From NCBI RefSeq assembly GCF_963676685.1, contig NC_092345.1, positions 99,200,001 through 99,264,000 of the forward strand: DNA of 64,000 bases, in the 5' to 3' direction. The notes under the pieces were generated by a model. That model had not been told where the DNA came from, searched no databases, and was given only the letters and a program-made list of their open reading frames with translations. This DNA comes from Mytilus edulis. Its lineage: Eukaryota. How positions within the stretch are numbered: position 1 is the stretch's first letter; every line of letters begins with the position of its first letter. Shown in pieces: positions 47,801 to 61,093 of this stretch. The position numbers were made by a program, and so were the translations under genes.

Positions 47801-50800
47801 GCAATCTCAAAAACACGAACATAGCTACTGTTCTTTATAATAATACATTAAATACTTGTACAATTATCCCAACTGATACAAAATATGAAGGTAGCAGCTT
47901 TATTATCATAATATTAACTTTACCTGTATCCATTTATTGACAATTGGTTTATATTTAGTAACAATCAGTCTATAATGATCTTTAAGTGTCTGGAGTAGAT
48001 CTTTGTTATCGTCTGTTTCCTGCAGCGACACGACACCTGGTGTCATATCTATAGATAGATTATATTTAAAACTGTGTAGCCCATGTTCCTGTAGGACGTT
48101 CTCTTCCTCATCACTTTCACTATCATCGTCCATTTCATTCTCGGTACAATTTTCATCACTTTCAGAATCATTATAGACAGAATTACTTCCCTTGATGGAA
48201 GAACTGTTTGTTTTATCATCCGTAGCTATATCCTCACTACAATTTTCACTTTTAATTTTACTAGTTAATGTACCAATGGGTTTATCATTATCATTTTTAC
48301 TACTAATACATGTGGATATATTATTAATTTCCAAGTCTGATGAATCTTTCACCTCACATTCTGGTTGATTACTGTTTGAACCAGAAGTCAGATCATCGTC
48401 GGTTGTTGTAGTCACTTTATCACCATCTGTCTCTGTACAGGTTTTTGATGATTCACCATCTGTCTCTGTACAGGTTTTTGATGATTCACCATCTGTCACT
48501 GTACAGGTTTTTGATAATTCTCCATCTATGACTGTACAAGTTTTTGATGATTCGCCATCTGTCTCTGTACAGGTTTTTGATGATTCACCATCTGTCACTG
48601 TACAGGTTTTAGATGATTCGCCATCTGTAACTGTACAGGTTGCAGTTCTACTATTCTCAACACATGATTTTGTTATTGAACTTGTGTCATCCTCTCCTGT
48701 CTCGATGAAGAAATCATCAGGACTAGGTAATATCAACTGGAAACCAGTTTTTGCTTCTGTTATAGTATTCTTGATGTCTTCTAGCATTTCTGTAAGATGA
48801 TTTAATAAAGGGTTACTGTTAAAGTAATGGTGAAAATATACATTAAAGTGAGTACTGTAAATTCCAAAATAATTGTGTGCAAAAATTACTTAATCATTGA
48901 TTCTAGACAATAATCCTGTTTAATTAATGTAAAAAATTTAAAAATGCAACTTTAAATTATTTCGATCATAACTCTGTCACTAATTTTTTTACAATAATAA
49001 AACATTGCAATATTTTCTGATTTTACATTATATGTTTGAGAATGAAAAATAATTTTGTACAGCGTTTAACTTTAAAGATTTATGTAAAGTATAAATAGTC
49101 TATAGTACAAAATCATTCTATAAACTTTGGATTTTATTCTTCACCGGGATAGGTTTGAAAGGGGACATGTCCCTCTATGAAGCAAATATGAATAATGCAT
49201 ATATTTGAAGAGATAAGATCTCAAGCAATTCTAAATTAGTTCATAATGGAAGAGGATGCAATTAATAAACAAAAAACTAGATTAAATCAGTCAAATGAAG
49301 TAGAAATTTCCATTTACTGACCATTCATTTGTTCTAATGTCTTCTCCATTCTTTCTTTGGCAATTTTCTTCAGTTTCTCCTCTTTCTCCTTTTCTTGTTT
49401 TTGCTGTAGTTCAGTTCTTGATCTAATGCCATTAAAATCAATCTAAAACATTTTGATTATATTGTAATTATCTTATAAAATACTTGTATAAAATAAACCT
49501 ATAAACTTAAATTTACAATCATAAAAGTTGTTAACAAGAAAACATCCATTAAATCATAAAACCCTTTTCAATATTGAATTACTTATCAAAATTGCTATAG
49601 GATTTGGTTTATTGATATGAATGCTGCTTACATGCATTATTTTGAACCTAGATAATTATAAAAATTAATCAAAAATTTATAAAAGATTAATTAAACCATC
49701 AATTTTTTTTATGAAACATTACAATCAACTGTTACAATAATACTTTTTTAATATACCTCTTTATGGTTTTGTGTTTTTAGCATTTTACGAAAAGTTTTCA
49801 ACTATGTATAACTTGAGGTCGTATTGAGGAGGAGTTCCTCCACCATTTTGCATTATAAAATGGAGAAAAGAGCTAGATTTTCAATGAAAAAAGCAGGACT
49901 GCAATTCATTTGTTACTTTCATTAAATTGAGGAAAAGAACATGATTTTATAATATTATTTTGACTATTCTTCTTTAAATAATTGATTGAAAATTCTTTAA
50001 ACTTTTCCTTATAAGAGGAGATAACCCAGATAATCTTAATATTTAATAAAGGAATAAATTGATTTTTTTTGGAATTACAGCAAGAATTAAATATATTCTA
50101 ATAATACAAAGCATTCTATAAGAAGCTATATATATCTTCTCATATTTTATTTAAAATTTCTGTCATTTAGTTTTCTTTTTATTCACATAATAATACTCTT
50201 CACAATATAATCCAACCTTTTTGCAAGTTTTGAGGAAATTGAATCCCAGAGTGAGTCTTTTGTATTCCTCCCCAAACTTATCATACCACTTCTGTATGGC
50301 TGAGTAAGCACTAGACTTCAATAAATCACTGGCGGCTTTAGGTGGAGGTAAAGGATTATCATAATCTGTTTCTGTAATGTCAGAAAAACTCATCTATTAT
50401 AATAATACAATAACAATATCCACGAAGACTAAATATTACAAACATCATCAAAGAGTCAAGTTTTAACCAAGTAAAATAAACAAAAGTTCAATGCAACAAT
50501 TTAAAGTACAGTCTTCATAACATAATCCAACTAATCTATCATTTTGATGATGATGGGTGTTTATGACCTTGACAGGCTATCCAGTCCTCGCATGGTTGGT
50601 CAGTCTCATGTTAAATATGCGAGACCATTTTTAAGGTGTACACAGCATTTTTGGTTATGTCTATCACTGTGTTTAATTTCCCCAAATATAAGTGGTCAGT
50701 TAAGGTTGATAAATTAAAGGAGGGGTGTATGCCAATGAGACAGTAACTTAACAACATAAAATACCAACATGTAGACAAAAACTTTTTCTGATGTGATGAA

Positions 50801-55194: not shown

Positions 55195-56567
55195 TGTCGT
55201 GTACAAGTTGCAATTTTGTACAGGTTATAACATGTACAAAAATATTGTACATGTTATAATTTTACAATGCTAAAATACAAGTTATAACATGTACAAAAGT
55301 ACCCCGTACATGTTATAACATGTACAAAATGTTGCTTAAAAGTGGTTTCAACCTGTACAAAATTTGAAATAGTAATAAAGCAGAATATACATGCACGATT
55401 GAAATTTACTAAATAATAAAGAACGATAATCAAAAGCAAAAAAAAGTGCATTATTTACAGCATGCATTAAATACTACATGTTCATACATTTCAGAAACAA
55501 TTTTGTTTTACTTGTTGCTACGAGACAGATAAATTTGAATCCTTGAGTTGCACAAAACGTTCATTCTCCTACATTTACACCTACCAGACTTACAAATGCC
55601 TTTCTTACACTGACAATGCACAATGTCGTGCCCTCCACTCAATGATAACTTACAAACTATTTTTCTCACACTCATATGTGGACTTCAGACACATATGAAG
55701 TTGCATTTGCAAAAAACTAAACCGGGTTTCTACTCAAGTATCCCTTTATTTGTCTAATTGTATAGCTGCCAATTGTTCATTCACATTCATCACCACCCCT
55801 TTTATGTTTCTCTCATCGGCCAGACCCCTATCAATGAACGGCCTGAATAGGAACGATAACGCTATCGCCTTGGGGTTTGGGAGGGAACGAAGAAGTATAC
55901 CAGTAGGTTTCATGCTGAAACTTGCGTTATCAGCCATGTTGGCATCACTTAATTCAATTACCATTGTGTCTGTGTCTAACTCAATGGTTTGTTTATCTGG
56001 TGAATCATGACCATTTGCAATTGTAATGATGAATTTACCATCAGTTTCAGTGTTCGTGTCAGTAATAATGTCCGTCTCTGACATTGTTTTCTCAGTGTCG
56101 GTATTATGTTTTGTCTCTGTAAAAGGGTCTTCACTATCAGTATTATTGGCTACAGAACTTGCTTCAAAAATTGCTTCTAAGTCTTCTTCTGTTTGAATAT
56201 CAGATGAGAATACCGAATAATGTTTATTGACTACATGTGTATCTTAAAAGCCTTTAAGGTATTAATTAAATATTAAAAGTATTTATTTGGTCATTAATTG
56301 TATCAAAAAGGCAGCACACTAACATGAATGGAAAATAACAAAAATATTATTGAAGTTAATGGCATGTGTTGTAAGAATATAAACATATTTTGTTTTCAAA
56401 TTTTGTACAAGTCAAAACCATTTATAAGCAATATTTTGTACGCAATAAGATGTATGAGGTACTTTTGTACATGTTATAACTTGTATTTTAGCATTGTACA
56501 AATTATAACATGGACATTTTTTTTGTACACGTTATAACCTGTACAAAATCGCAACCATTACACGACA
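55195..56567 (-). mobile_element. Internally deleted Ginger2/KRBA2-like (integrase-type) DNA transposon
   Basis: TGT...ACA termini with ~120-bp TIRs rich in gttataacatgtacaaa. Flanks gata/tata. Degenerate transposase C-terminus IQTEEDLE...PFIDRGLADERNIKGVV...SGGHDIVHCQCKKGICKSGRCKCRRMNVLCNSR...NK*. Confidence 0.85.
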
Positions 56568-56865
56568 TATATATAGCTAACAAACAACTTAATATATTAA
56601 AAAGACGACAAGACTCAAGCATGATTTATTGTATATTAAAAAAGATTTAATCTAACGGAATTTCTAAACTTTCAATAGCTATAAGGACAATGATCAGTCT
56701 AGAGTCAGTCTAGAAGCCAGTTTAATTGTAGATAAACAGACAGATTAATACAAAAAATAGACAACATAGTAAATTCAAGAAAATTGTAAAATAAATATAA
56801 ATACAAATCAAGTTTTTTTTATCGTTATTCACATAAAAATTAAAAGGAATAATTCATGCCTAATT

Positions 56866-57942
56866 CTATTGGCACATGCAACAGATAGCAGCCAGATCCG
56901 AATTGTCACAGACGGAGCTTTTGGCATCCAAGCTCTTGAAATACTGGTCATATTCTGTACATGGTGTATTCAAAACAGAGTCATAGCATACTGCGTCTGT
57001 CAAATCTTTAGAAAATAGAAAGAAAATACAACTAACAATATCTCAATATGTAAAGATCGAGAAAGTGAAAATTAATATTTTGTTATTTATTGACGAACGA
57101 ATCGACCTGACCAAGTCTTACATTATATTTTGCTGCATCAGAGACATATATAGTACAATACTCTTGTTGTATAATGAGCAGATAACGAGTAAACTGGTAT
57201 AATAGAAGTGCATGTTTGTTAACCATCTGGTTTTTTTTTTACTCATTATGACACAAGTTAAAACTCGTTCAGTGTAGGTTATAACAGATTTCATGGGACG
57301 GTATAATCCTCTGCAATTACATAAACCATCATAAAGGTTTGTTGTCTCTATTACATATTCCACATTTTACTTCTCAATTTTACTGGAATCTAATAAATTA
57401 TCTTGGTTAACATGTGCGAACCCATGGATATCTTTCCATGTCTTGACTTAAAAGACACAATTGTTCGATTATTGATGGGCGTTTCCATAGGAAAATATTT
57501 ACTCCAATTTTCTTCTACACGCAGATGTCTTTTCTCGTTCATAATATCCCGACGAAACACTTACATTTCAAAACACATTATTACATCTATCAGACCTCGT
57601 CCTTACAGAAAAAAGTTACAAATATTCTATGTCCTCGATTACCAGTTCTGTGTAAAGTGTTCTAGTAAAGGAACCTAAAAATCAAAAGGATCCTATATGT
57701 TCGTGATAAGGCTAAAACTACTTTAATACTGTTGCCTGTATATACCAACCAATAAAGAAGTGTGGAAAACTGATGTGCTCTATGTTTTTAGTCCATGCAA
57801 AACAATCGTTCAACCAGAAAAAACTAACTATTAAAGGATAAGACAGTATACTATTTTATCTCATCAACTGATTCAGACCAACGTATTACTTACATGTTAC
57901 AAGAAGGAGTCCAAAAATTACAAACAGAAATAATTTGTTCAT
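56866..57942 (-). CDS. Small secreted 6-Cys peptide, paralog B (62 aa; exons 57942-57894, 57005-56866)
   Basis: MNKLFLFVIFGLLLVTYLTDA|VCYDSVLNTPCTEYDQYFKSLDAKSSVCDNSDLAAICCMCQ*. GTAAGT donor and tttctattttctaaag acceptor with a phase-1 join. Same exon architecture and Cys spacing as paralog A. Confidence 0.75.
57120..57674 (-). pseudogene. Possible decayed exon inside the paralog-B intron
   Basis: Acceptor gatttttag at 57675, then coding-like segments broken by stops and frameshifts (LFSVR..., METPI..., TWKDI..., VLTCVIM...ICSL). Weak resemblance to FaMeT/PAN modules. Confidence 0.25.
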
Positions 57943-59117
57943 TTTTTTTTTATCTGTTTCACTAAACTCTCAAACTTTAGAAGACGTAATGAATCAAATA
58001 AATGTTTGCTTGTTTATACATCCGAATTAATAATGAATTAGAAATCACATATACCAATGGCTTAACATAATACACTAACAATTCCCAAACGAATAACCCA
58101 GCTTTACAAAGAAAGCGGGTATTAATAAAACATAATCCATCGGATTTCGTATTTGCATGATACAAATGATTGAATGGTCAACATATCACGGTTTATGTCA
58201 AATGGTATATACTAATTTAGAAAAAGGGGGAGGTACATCTCCTAGCAGTCCTTTGTAAATTTATGTTGATAATTATCATTTTGCTTAGTTTCCTCCAAGA
58301 CCAATTCTAAAATCGGACTCGGACTTCTTTTAAACCGAGTTTCACTGTATGTAATGCTGTGTTTGTGCTTCTTCCATATCGGCTAGAGATATGGAGGAGG
58401 TTGAGATCTAACACAATATATATTTAACCCCCGCCGCACGTATGCGCCTGTCCAAAGTCAGAAACATATAGCCTTTGTTAGTCTTGTGTTGTTGTTTTTT
58501 TTAATTCAATTACGTGTTTCGGAGTTGAGTGTGGCCTCCATTTTCGCTGAACTAGTATACATTAATTGTTCAGCCTCCGCTGTGTTGAGGAACCATTGAT
58601 GGCCTTAGTCTGTTTTCTGCTCTCTAATCGAGAAATTTCTCTTTGACACATTTCTTGTTTTTATTTACATTTTGATATCAATTACAATGAGATGTTCGTC
58701 AGATATAACTTGCTATGGTTGCTTTTTTAAAACAAGTTTTATATAAACCTAACACAATTTTGTAAAATTTGCATCGAAGAACTCACCAGTAAACTGCGAT
58801 AATTTTTATCGATAGATAATGAATAGTTTTCTGGTAACGGATGTCGTTCTTTTGATTTTTTTAAAAACACACAATTTGCCAAAATCTTGCAAATTTGCCG
58901 TTTTAAGTTATGATTTATAGTACTTATAATTAACTTATCTGTTTAAAAATAGCCCATGCAATAGACTGAAAGACTGAAAATGACCATAGCGTGAAATAAT
59001 GAGGAAATTGGCCCCCTCTCTTTGTGGTACATCTAAGATTCATTGCTTTCTTAGGTGAAAATCATTAAAAAAAAAAGAGCCCCATACCTTAATGTGAGAA
59101 GGAAAGGCACTCTTCTT

Positions 59118-60157
59118 TTACTTTCTTCCATTGGTCAAACATAAGCAACACGTATGAGGTAGCTGGTCATTGTCACATATTGATTGTCCATACATTTCAC
59201 GCGAAGCATCATCTAGTTCTTGGCACGAACTACTAAATATATAATCTACACATTCAGAAAATTCTACCTCACTGGACGCAACATCTGAAAAAGAATCAAG
59301 GGATTGCTAATTTGAAAACTAAAAAGCCTATTTCGAAACTTTTATTAGATTGCTATTGAGACAGCATATACATATAATACATGTACATTGTATTTCATTT
59401 TTCTCAAAGAGGTGTATATTAATATAGTTATCAAAGGTACCAGGATAATAATTTAAAACGTCAGACGCGCGTTTCGTCTACATAAGACTCATCAGTGACA
59501 CTAAGATCAAAATAGTTAAAAAGCCAAACAAGTAAAATGTTGAAGAGCAATGAGGACCCAATATTCAAAAAGGTTGTGCCACATAAGGCTGAGGTAATCT
59601 ATTTCTGGGATAAGAAAATCTTTAGTTTTTCGAGAAATTCAAAGTATATCCGTCGTTATTTGTTGAAGAACATACAAAAGACTTTTCATTGCATTGAAAA
59701 GGGTATGCTTGATTAGGGCTAAAATTTTGCCATGCACAATAACACACATGGACCACTCATATAGTTGTTGCAAGCTTTAGCGTGGTGTTTACCCTAGGCA
59801 TATACGAGAACGGTTGGATTTGATAACGTCTCAATATATCCTGCTCACCTATAACGTCCACCTCTATTTAGCATTGATTTTTACCATCGAATTGAAGGAG
59901 ACTAGGAATGACTTTTGATGTGATCTCTAATGGTAAAATCACACAATAATAATAAGCCATATATCAAGAAATATTGAATATCAATTTTAGAAGCCTTTTT
60001 CATAATCGCAGCACATGTAAAAACTATTTAAGGTGATCAAATAAGGATTCCACCACCAATAATTGCTTATTAAACTCATTGAGTAATACTGAAACTACTT
60101 ACAGTTAAGAATGCAAATTCCAGTAAAACAAAGAAGAAATGCGAAAATTCTATTCAT
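59118..60157 (-). CDS. Small secreted 6-Cys peptide, paralog A, with C-terminal amidation signal (73 aa; exons 60157-60103, 59284-59118)
   Basis: MNRIFAFLLCFTGICILNYVAS|SEVEFSECVDYIFSSSCQELDDASREMYGQSICDNDQLPHTCCLCLTN-GRK*. GTAAGT donor and tctttttcag acceptor with a phase-1 join. TATATATA at 60241-60234. Confidence 0.8.
59460..59499 (-). ncRNA. Minimal type I hammerhead ribozyme in the intron of peptide gene A
   Basis: Minus strand gtca-CTGATGA-GTCT(tatgt)AGAC-GAAA-cgcgcg-TC-tgac. It has an intact core, stems I and II, a palindromic stem III and a GUC cleavage triplet. Confidence 0.85.
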
Positions 60158-61093
60158 TCTAACAAATATTTGTACTCAAACAATGAAAAGCAATTATTTA
60201 TGTCGTTGATAAAAATCTTCAAATATTTTTCAATATATATACTTTTTAAAATACTTAATCTATCAATTCTTTTACAATCGTTTTGTAACACATTTGAAAA
60301 CAAATTTTAATTCTTTATTTAAACGATAATCCGCTTTTACTTATATTACGATTGGCAAAACAATAACAAAAAAAAAAGGAAATACTTTTTGTAAGATTTT
60401 TAAGTCACAAAGTCACAAATTTACCCTATATACTAAACAATTTCAACTTTTTTTTATGTAACTGGAAATTTCGTTTATCAAGAAAAATCAGCTTCATTAA
60501 GCTGAGCGTTACATAGAAAAATGGAAATATGTATGTTAATGAACAACTCAACGACGAATGAGTAACTTTGCCTTGTATTCAAAAGGCGTAATATCGAAAT
60601 TTAGAAATCGCTGAATGAATGAATGAGAGGAAGGCCTGGATCAGTGTCATACAGTTTTACGTTTACTGGTTTTTTTTTAATAAAGAAATACATGTATTGA
60701 GTTCACTCAAAATGCCAATATAAAGATGACAAGAACTAATTTCGAATCAATAATATCACTCCTTTTCGATGACATAATTTTGATTCAACAGCTGTCTTAT
60801 TCAATAATGGCGTTGATCATTGATATTTTGCACTTTTCAACATAAAATTAGCTAACAAAGTATTACAAGTTAAATTGTTTTGATTTTGTTGTTGTTGTAA
60901 TTTTTTGGTGAGTTAATGTCGTCCATTTGAAAACTGGCTGTACTGAATATTGTATATACACATGACTTTCTAGTAAGTTGAACTGAATGTAGTTCAGTGG
61001 CAATTATACGACATAAATAATACGAACTTATCTACATATATATGTGTGATAAGATTTTATAGCCATTAATATAAGGCTGTACTTTAGTAAACA

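Follow-up and report, generated by a model that had tools for sequence, protein, structure and literature searches.

A three-exon mussel gene for a candidate amidated, cysteine-rich peptide, with the module exon of a tandem paralogue as its 3' untranslated exon

Mussels serve as a reference system for lineage-specific secreted peptides, and the families known from them are cationic, multi-copy and hypervariable defence peptides. CRP-I peptides follow the consensus C(X3-6)C(X1-7)CC(X3-4)C(X3-5)C; they carry a pro-region of approximately 15 residues ending in KR or RR, are encoded in four exons, form a multigene family and have a hypervariable mature region. A different order of cysteines, C-C-C-CC-C, is found in conotoxin framework XXIII (K-superfamily, im23a, PDB 2LMZ), and im23a is acidic. 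Here, we describe a minus-strand locus within a 64,000-nucleotide (nt) stretch of the Mytilus edulis genome (assembly GCF_963676685.1, contig NC_092345.1, positions 99,200,001 to 99,264,000 of the forward strand; hereafter, the window, to which all unprefixed coordinates refer), in which two six-cysteine modules, A and B, follow one another. A preliminary description had read this locus as two head-to-tail genes, each with a signal-peptide exon and a terminal exon carrying one module; the RNA examined gives one three-exon transcript. We propose, with a probability of roughly 0.6, that it represents a single expressed mussel gene of a low-copy, unnamed family of amidated-type peptides, whose product is likely a signalling ligand.

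The locus shares with MgCRP-I that both concern mussel-restricted, short, secreted six-cysteine peptides with the cysteine-rich part in a single exon, and that a phase-1 intron follows approximately 17 signal-peptide residues. In contrast to MgCRP-I, the array here is C-C-C-CC-C with loops of 8/15-16/8/0/1 residues, the pro-region and dibasic site are absent, and the family occupies a single locus with a conserved mature region; the array holds in all members of the family, which bears out its earlier separation from the C-C-CC-C-C pattern of CRP-I. Sequence similarity between MgCRP-I and the A/B family was not found. The likeness to framework XXIII, also noted previously, stands as far as the order of cysteines is concerned and found no support in sequence or fold. 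Im23a and the A/B peptides are molluscan secreted peptides with the same order and are partly helical (A and B according to their models), and im23a has an acidic surface cluster for which calcium binding has been suggested; however, 2LMZ was not among the Foldseek or VIA-align matches. The loop lengths of im23a presumably differ from those of A and B. Sharing framework XXIII means sharing an order of cysteines and does not show homology; conotoxin superfamilies are defined by their signal peptides. Furthermore, precursors of amidated hormones and neuropeptides resemble the locus in having a signal peptide, a C-terminal glycine followed by basic residues, low copy number and conservation between species; this likeness is one of functional class and does not show homology to catalogued molluscan prohormones. 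The mollusc neuropeptide surveys consulted, which are not searchable by sequence, gave no sign of such a peptide.

The transcript structure was derived from RNA placed on positions 56500-60500, namely contigs from runs X1 and X3 (organism A) and X2 (organism B), and raw reads from X24. The three contig runs originate from three studies with two species labels and were chosen as holding 7-12% of sampled words, about the level expected of spliced messenger RNA (mRNA); a gap in contig coverage is no proof of absence. Contigs from the three runs give an mRNA of 60179..60103, 59284..59088 and 57005..~56614. In each run, one contig joins 59088-59284 to 57005 and the sequence below it (depths of 138 in X1, 25 in X3 and 121 in X2), and the X2 contig extends from 59284 to 60103-60179, skipping 818 nt. 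The predicted junction 60103/59284 was thus confirmed by RNA from X2, while the assignment of the A module exon as terminal proved wrong, its GT donor at 59088 being spliced to 57005 in three contig runs. The features of the locus are as follows (UTR, untranslated region):

60103..60179, minus strand: exon 1, with a 5'UTR of at least 22 nt, ATG at 60157, then 18 codons and 1 nt (X2 contig)
60157..60103, minus strand: coding part of this exon (A1), from the ATG through 18 codons and 1 nt, followed by GTAAGT
59285..60102, minus strand: intron 1, 818 nt, GT..AG (joint in X2)
59088..59284, minus strand: exon 2, 197 nt, with the end of the signal peptide, module A, the stop, 30 nt of 3'UTR and a GT donor
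59118..59129, minus strand: Gly-Arg-Lys-stop, an amidation-type signal at the C-terminal end of peptide A
57006..59087, minus strand: intron 2, 2082 nt, GT..AG (joint in X1, X3 and X2, side lengths 197-201 nt)
57942..57894, minus strand: exon B1, ATG, 16 codons and 1 nt, then GTAAGT (phase 1)
56614..57005, minus strand: exon 3, terminal, 3'UTR in the observed mRNA (X1 contig)
56866..57005, minus strand: open frame of module B, six cysteines, loops 8/16/8/0/1, stop at 56868-56866
56625..56630, minus strand: AATAAA polyadenylation signal, 11 nt upstream of the longest contig end (X1, 56614)

The contig end at 56614 is consistent with an RNA end, though not proof of one. The second donor (59088) follows the stop codon of A (59120-59118) after 30 nt. 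By the 50-55-nt rule, established mainly in vertebrates, a stop at such a distance from the last junction is no mark for nonsense-mediated decay. Exon 2 ends in phase 0, the frame of B needs phase 1, and a TAA at 59091-59089 closes the B frame ahead of the junction; module B is therefore untranslated 3'UTR in the observed mRNA. Intron 2 of this transcript encloses the entire 5' half of the supposed gene B. The junction 57894/57005, which the two-gene reading called for, was not seen in the X1, X2 and X3 contigs, and no contig covered the B signal exon at 90% likeness or above (depth 0 in X1 and X2; a nearby X3 piece, 57742-57883, is intronic). As the contigs also cross the 57005 acceptor unbranched, the first exon of B is absent or minor in these samples. 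The raw RNA of X24 gave zero reads on any exon in 1.87 billion letters read, and expression is therefore restricted to particular samples. In place of the two-gene model, the locus is better described as a three-exon gene with a captured paralogue exon as its last.

The cysteine modules themselves, two minus-strand arrays of the form C-x8-C-x15/16-C-x8-CC-x-C, were reproduced where they had been reported, as were the signal-like exons A1 and B1 ending in phase 1 at GTAAGT and the acidic character of the peptides (core isoelectric point, pI, of 4.3 for A and 4.05 for B). Loops between the six cysteines measure 8, 15 or 16, 8, 0 and 1 residues in A and B, and both module exons, starting at 59284 and 57005, are preceded by a pyrimidine tract and AG and open with two bases that finish a split codon. 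A six-frame regular-expression scan of the 64-kb window found the full array only at A and B. Their local alignment scored 78, a value that none of 5000 shuffles reached (26 +/- 5, maximum 54), and the resemblance is real and beyond chance. At the DNA level, no similarity between the A unit and the B unit was detected with blastn, and the duplication is therefore old, its unit boundaries being untraceable.

Protein and profile searches of the 1.37-Gb genome returned A and B and, besides these, just one more copy of the pair, on contig C432. Along 4.5 kb, this copy (C432:26101-30582; matches L002 and L004) agrees with the window at 99.2% identity; the alignment opens 30 gaps and has 3 mismatches, an indel-rich pattern that suggests a haplotig or a duplicate contig left unpolished. 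Since A, B and this duplicate are the only matches, the peptide family amounts to one locus per genome. Module A of the C432 copy is interrupted in frame by a TAG that arises from two 1-bp indels 15 nt apart; we rejected it as a true disabling change, the indel signature pointing most likely to an assembly error. Weak matches of the profile in the same genome (L007-L010, E>3) were set aside, and the translation of L007 lacked the array.

Relatives were sought with single exons as queries. A HMMER profile of A and B searched against 1.84 billion representatives recovered five real clusters with E-values from 2.6e-19 to 3.5e-6, and a second profile search with the alignment of these relatives, against a set of 5.8 billion clusters, added one near-duplicate. 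The total stands at seven unnamed clusters, three of which are near-identical variants of one type. All are translated genomic open reading frames from ENA, JGI/IMG and Logan, running from intron into module; no spliced precursor and no named, NCBI or UniRef protein occurred among them in the 5.8-billion-cluster set. All five homologue types have identical loop lengths and an acidic pI (family range 4.05-5.0), and conservation extends to C-x-D, an aromatic residue or Leu four residues past Cys1, C-x-[ED]-x-[DE], S-[IV]-C-D-[ND] and CC-x-C. In each of the five types, the module is followed by one to three residues, then Gly-Lys, Gly-Gly-Lys or Gly-Arg-Lys, and a stop. P0001 shares 77% identity with A, of which it is an orthologue (A type). 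The B-type P0002 ends in Gly-Arg-Lys and has an identity of 63% with B and of 43% with A; as it bridges A and B, these two are true homologues. A word-indexed protein search with module A yielded zero candidates. Two further matches were discarded: P0004, recovered by HMMER, is a 1461-residue low-complexity protein with spurious Pfam matches, and a match of P0002 to contigs of an alphaproteobacterial metagenome-assembled genome lacked the cysteine array and was ascribed to chance. The intron-derived N-terminal part of P0005 matches the metagenome contigs JYMV01011858.1 and JYMV01042958.1 (L011 and L012) at 61-74% identity, which suggests that the stretch upstream of the P0005 module is a dispersed repeat.

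No named family could be assigned. With hmmscan against Pfam-A, neither A nor B had a family match at E<=10, nor did P0001, P0002, P0003 and P0006 at E<=1; the likeness to ShKT/PLAC modules suggested previously is thereby left unsupported, as is membership of the myticins and the other mussel families that Pfam covers. The mussel-specific myticin model PF10690 gave at least 14 clustered matches above cut-off in the same genome, which marks it as that of a Mytilus-type mussel; the model therefore works here. Among PDB sequences, the family profile found only a chance match to tektin (E 0.23). Foldseek returned no match and VIA-align none across 48,161 PDB representatives, although for a 54-residue model the lack of a structural match does not prove a new fold. 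The best matches in the ESM Atlas, KRAB boxes at 0.87, were rejected as being at chance level. We found no description of such a peptide in the literature, which is weak evidence since papers are not sequence-searchable. The family thus appears to be undescribed, in agreement with what had been supposed for it, there being no match in Pfam, PDB or among named proteins.

The precursor of peptide A, with its signal-like N-terminal leader and its C-terminal glycine followed by basic residues before the stop, has the pattern of an amidated secreted peptide. Signal peptides were assigned by hydrophobicity and position, the mean Kyte-Doolittle value from residue 4 to the end being 2.37 for the A leader and 3.02 for the B leader. 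No dibasic site lies between signal peptide and Cys1 in the translated pieces of A or B. According to the processing that we propose, the three-exon gene would encode a precursor of approximately 74 residues, which the signal peptide, encoded by exon 1 together with the start of exon 2, would direct to the endoplasmic reticulum; cleavage would then remove this leader, probably behind small residues close to the 5' end of exon 2. Three disulfides would form in the module of some 47 residues, on the C-x8-C-x15/16-C-x8-CC-x-C scaffold, a carboxypeptidase would trim the C-terminal Arg-Lys, and peptidylglycine alpha-amidating monooxygenase would turn the exposed glycine into a C-terminal amide. The expected product, approximately 47 residues long, is a strongly acidic secreted peptide whose net charge would be near -8. 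AlphaFold2 models, also computed from single exons, reached a predicted local distance difference test (pLDDT) score of 72.7 for A (core 80-88) and 68.2 for B on a shallow family alignment, and agree that a helix directly follows Cys2 and that the chain makes helical turns at Cys3 and about CC-x-C.

Variation in the RNA is informative on coding. All five listed differences between RNA and genome in the A coding exon fall on third codon positions and four of them are synonymous, compared with approximately 20% expected of random single-base changes in this exon; the four synonymous differences are common to the three runs, and the fifth, Phe to Leu, occurs in X2 only. In the B frame, two shared differences are synonymous and two, seen in organism B only, are nonsynonymous. 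Between the species labels, the B frame shows 4 differences per 140 nt and the adjacent UTR 2 substitutions and 1 indel per 126 nt. Relative to the window, the expressed alleles carry 8-10 differences over the 197 nt of exon 2 and 1-6 in the 235-392 nt of exon 3 covered. Four exon 2 differences are common to both species labels, and the exon 2 of the window therefore looks like a divergent haplotype.

As regards function, the peptide would most likely be a signalling ligand (hormone, neuropeptide or pheromone-like), possibly calcium-binding or calcium-dependent, to judge from its sequence characters. We rank signalling above defence or toxicity because of the single locus, the fixed scaffold, the conservation, the missing pro-region and the amidation tail. 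Alternatively, though this is less likely, the peptide would act in defence or in the manner of a toxin, for instance as an anionic antimicrobial or by targeting channels or receptors. Small size, secretion and richness in disulfides agree with it, as does the phase-1 intron after some 17 signal residues, which recalls CRP-I; amidation and the C-C-C-CC-C order both occur in conotoxins, of which im23a is acidic too, and mussels possess many lineage-specific families of defence peptides. Against this stands a single locus without expansion, where the same genome holds at least 14 myticin matches, and a mature region that is conserved rather than hypervariable. Moreover, the peptide is strongly anionic, it lacks the pro-region and dibasic site of CRP-I, and no toxin or antimicrobial sequence or fold matched in Pfam or PDB. 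Conserved cysteines amid diverged sequence had previously been considered typical of defence, toxin or signalling peptides; as regards defence and toxins, one locus, fixed loops, an orthologue at 77% identity and mostly synonymous changes speak otherwise.

An acidic, calcium- or mineral-binding matrix peptide of shell, byssus or mucus would account for the pI of 4.0-5.0, for the Asp and Glu conserved beside the cysteines in all members and for an expression that is restricted and locally high. We consider this improbable, as the peptide is very small and free of repeats and low-complexity acidic runs, and its conserved amidation-type tail is atypical. Such tails are typical of bioactive peptides and not of matrix proteins. 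Less credit still can be given to the idea that the frames are untranslated, the transcript being a non-coding RNA and the cysteine pattern a relic: the gene is absent from the annotated protein sets searched and the C432 copy of A has an in-frame TAG, but the 1-bp indels behind the latter are probably assembly errors, the listed variation in A is confined to third positions and mostly synonymous, and five divergent homologue types keep cysteines, loop lengths and tail.

Several observations weigh against our interpretation of a single expressed gene for an amidated signalling peptide. The joint 60103/59284 was seen only in the organism B run (X2), and exon 1 is uncovered in X1 and X3. The X1 contig ends 4 nt past 59284, and the X3 contig adds 116 nt absent from 56500-60500, with TCAG directly before 59284. 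Organism A may therefore have an alternative or structurally variant 5' exon; its DNA runs hold 80-89% of the words of the window, and a scan for such an exon found no TCAG|GT or TCAG|GC donor upstream on the minus strand within the window. Fragmentation driven by polymorphism could account for the X1 end but not for X3. Apart from this, disulfide bonding, amidation and removal of the signal peptide are inferences from sequence, the structure models are of moderate confidence and built on a shallow alignment, and an acidic, disulfide-rich composition also fits anionic defence or the binding of mineral or matrix. The synonymous excess is incomplete evidence too, the listed differences being 4-5 of the 8-10 in exon 2.

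With regard to module B, its retained cysteines and motifs and its 63% identity to P0002 indicate that it was clearly functional through most of its history. It is without the Gly-basic tail that P0001, P0002, P0003, P0005 and P0006 keep, and as P0002 retains Gly-Arg-Lys, comparison of these sequences marks the tail-less state as derived. In the observed mRNA, the donor past the stop of A is spliced to the exon that carries the module of this old tandem paralogue, and the exon supplies, out of frame, the 3'UTR and polyadenylation signal for the mRNA of A. For B itself, two readings are left, a relic that has fallen silent or a unit whose own promoter is active in other samples.

B may still make a peptide in some other tissue or life stage, whether its own promoter drives the B signal exon or exon 2 is skipped so that signal A is fused in frame to module B; we regard this tentatively as the lesser prospect, and the A-to-B splice would then reflect a terminal exon shared by two alternative first-exon units. 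The signal exon of B is intact and its phase-1 GTAAGT donor fits the phase of the 57005 acceptor, exon 1 of A is likewise phase-compatible with the B exon, and the six cysteines, S-V-C-D-N and CC-M-C-Q are kept at 63% identity to P0002. Neither species label shows a stop or frameshift in the B frame, and of the four differences listed there, two are synonymous. On the other hand, the signal exon of B is uncovered in three runs in which exon 3 is expressed at depths of 25-138 with unbranched contigs, the Gly-basic tail has been lost though every other member, including the closest relative, retains it, and the B frame is no better conserved than the neighbouring UTR between species labels. More doubtful is the larger proposal of a two-promoter unit whose peptide family would be confined to mussels, resemble hormones or pheromones and have a new disulfide fold; in such a unit, A uses the B exon as 3'UTR and a second promoter or skipping of exon 2 yields B. 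If true, one exon would be coding in one mRNA and UTR in the other.

The A/B family contrasts with the peptide families known from mussels in being anionic, low-copy, conserved on a fixed scaffold and probably amidated, and it is missing from the annotated protein sets searched. It thereby provides a candidate for an overlooked bivalve signalling molecule, for instance in reproduction, settlement or neuroendocrine control, and a small scaffold with no structural relative detectable in the searches above. The locus is furthermore a clean example of a tandem duplicate whose coding exon the neighbouring upstream gene has captured as its 3'UTR and polyadenylation exon. A three-exon gene of this kind would escape automated annotation or be labelled as non-coding.

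Other elements were observed in and around the gene. Intron 1 contains a repeat of approximately 225 bp at 59420-59650, which recurs thousands of times across the genome (a first look gave 4943 candidates, those listed being 89-91% identical). Within it, positions 59458-59501 on the minus strand match the type I hammerhead ribozyme with 31.8 bits (E 6e-5) against an Rfam gathering score of 34. RNA depth over the repeat rises to approximately 27,000 in X1, and many reads break at 59458/59462 and 59498/59499. A retrozyme-like element giving self-cleaving or circular RNA would fit these observations, and such elements have reportedly been found in mussels. Downstream of the gene, a 112-residue open frame (55746-56084, minus strand) begins approximately 530 nt past the polyadenylation signal. 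A 293-residue acidic open frame lies at 47906-48787 on the same strand and contains repeats of about ten residues in which Thr, Asp, Gly, Glu, Ser and Cys are abundant; the two frames are presumably exons of neighbouring genes.

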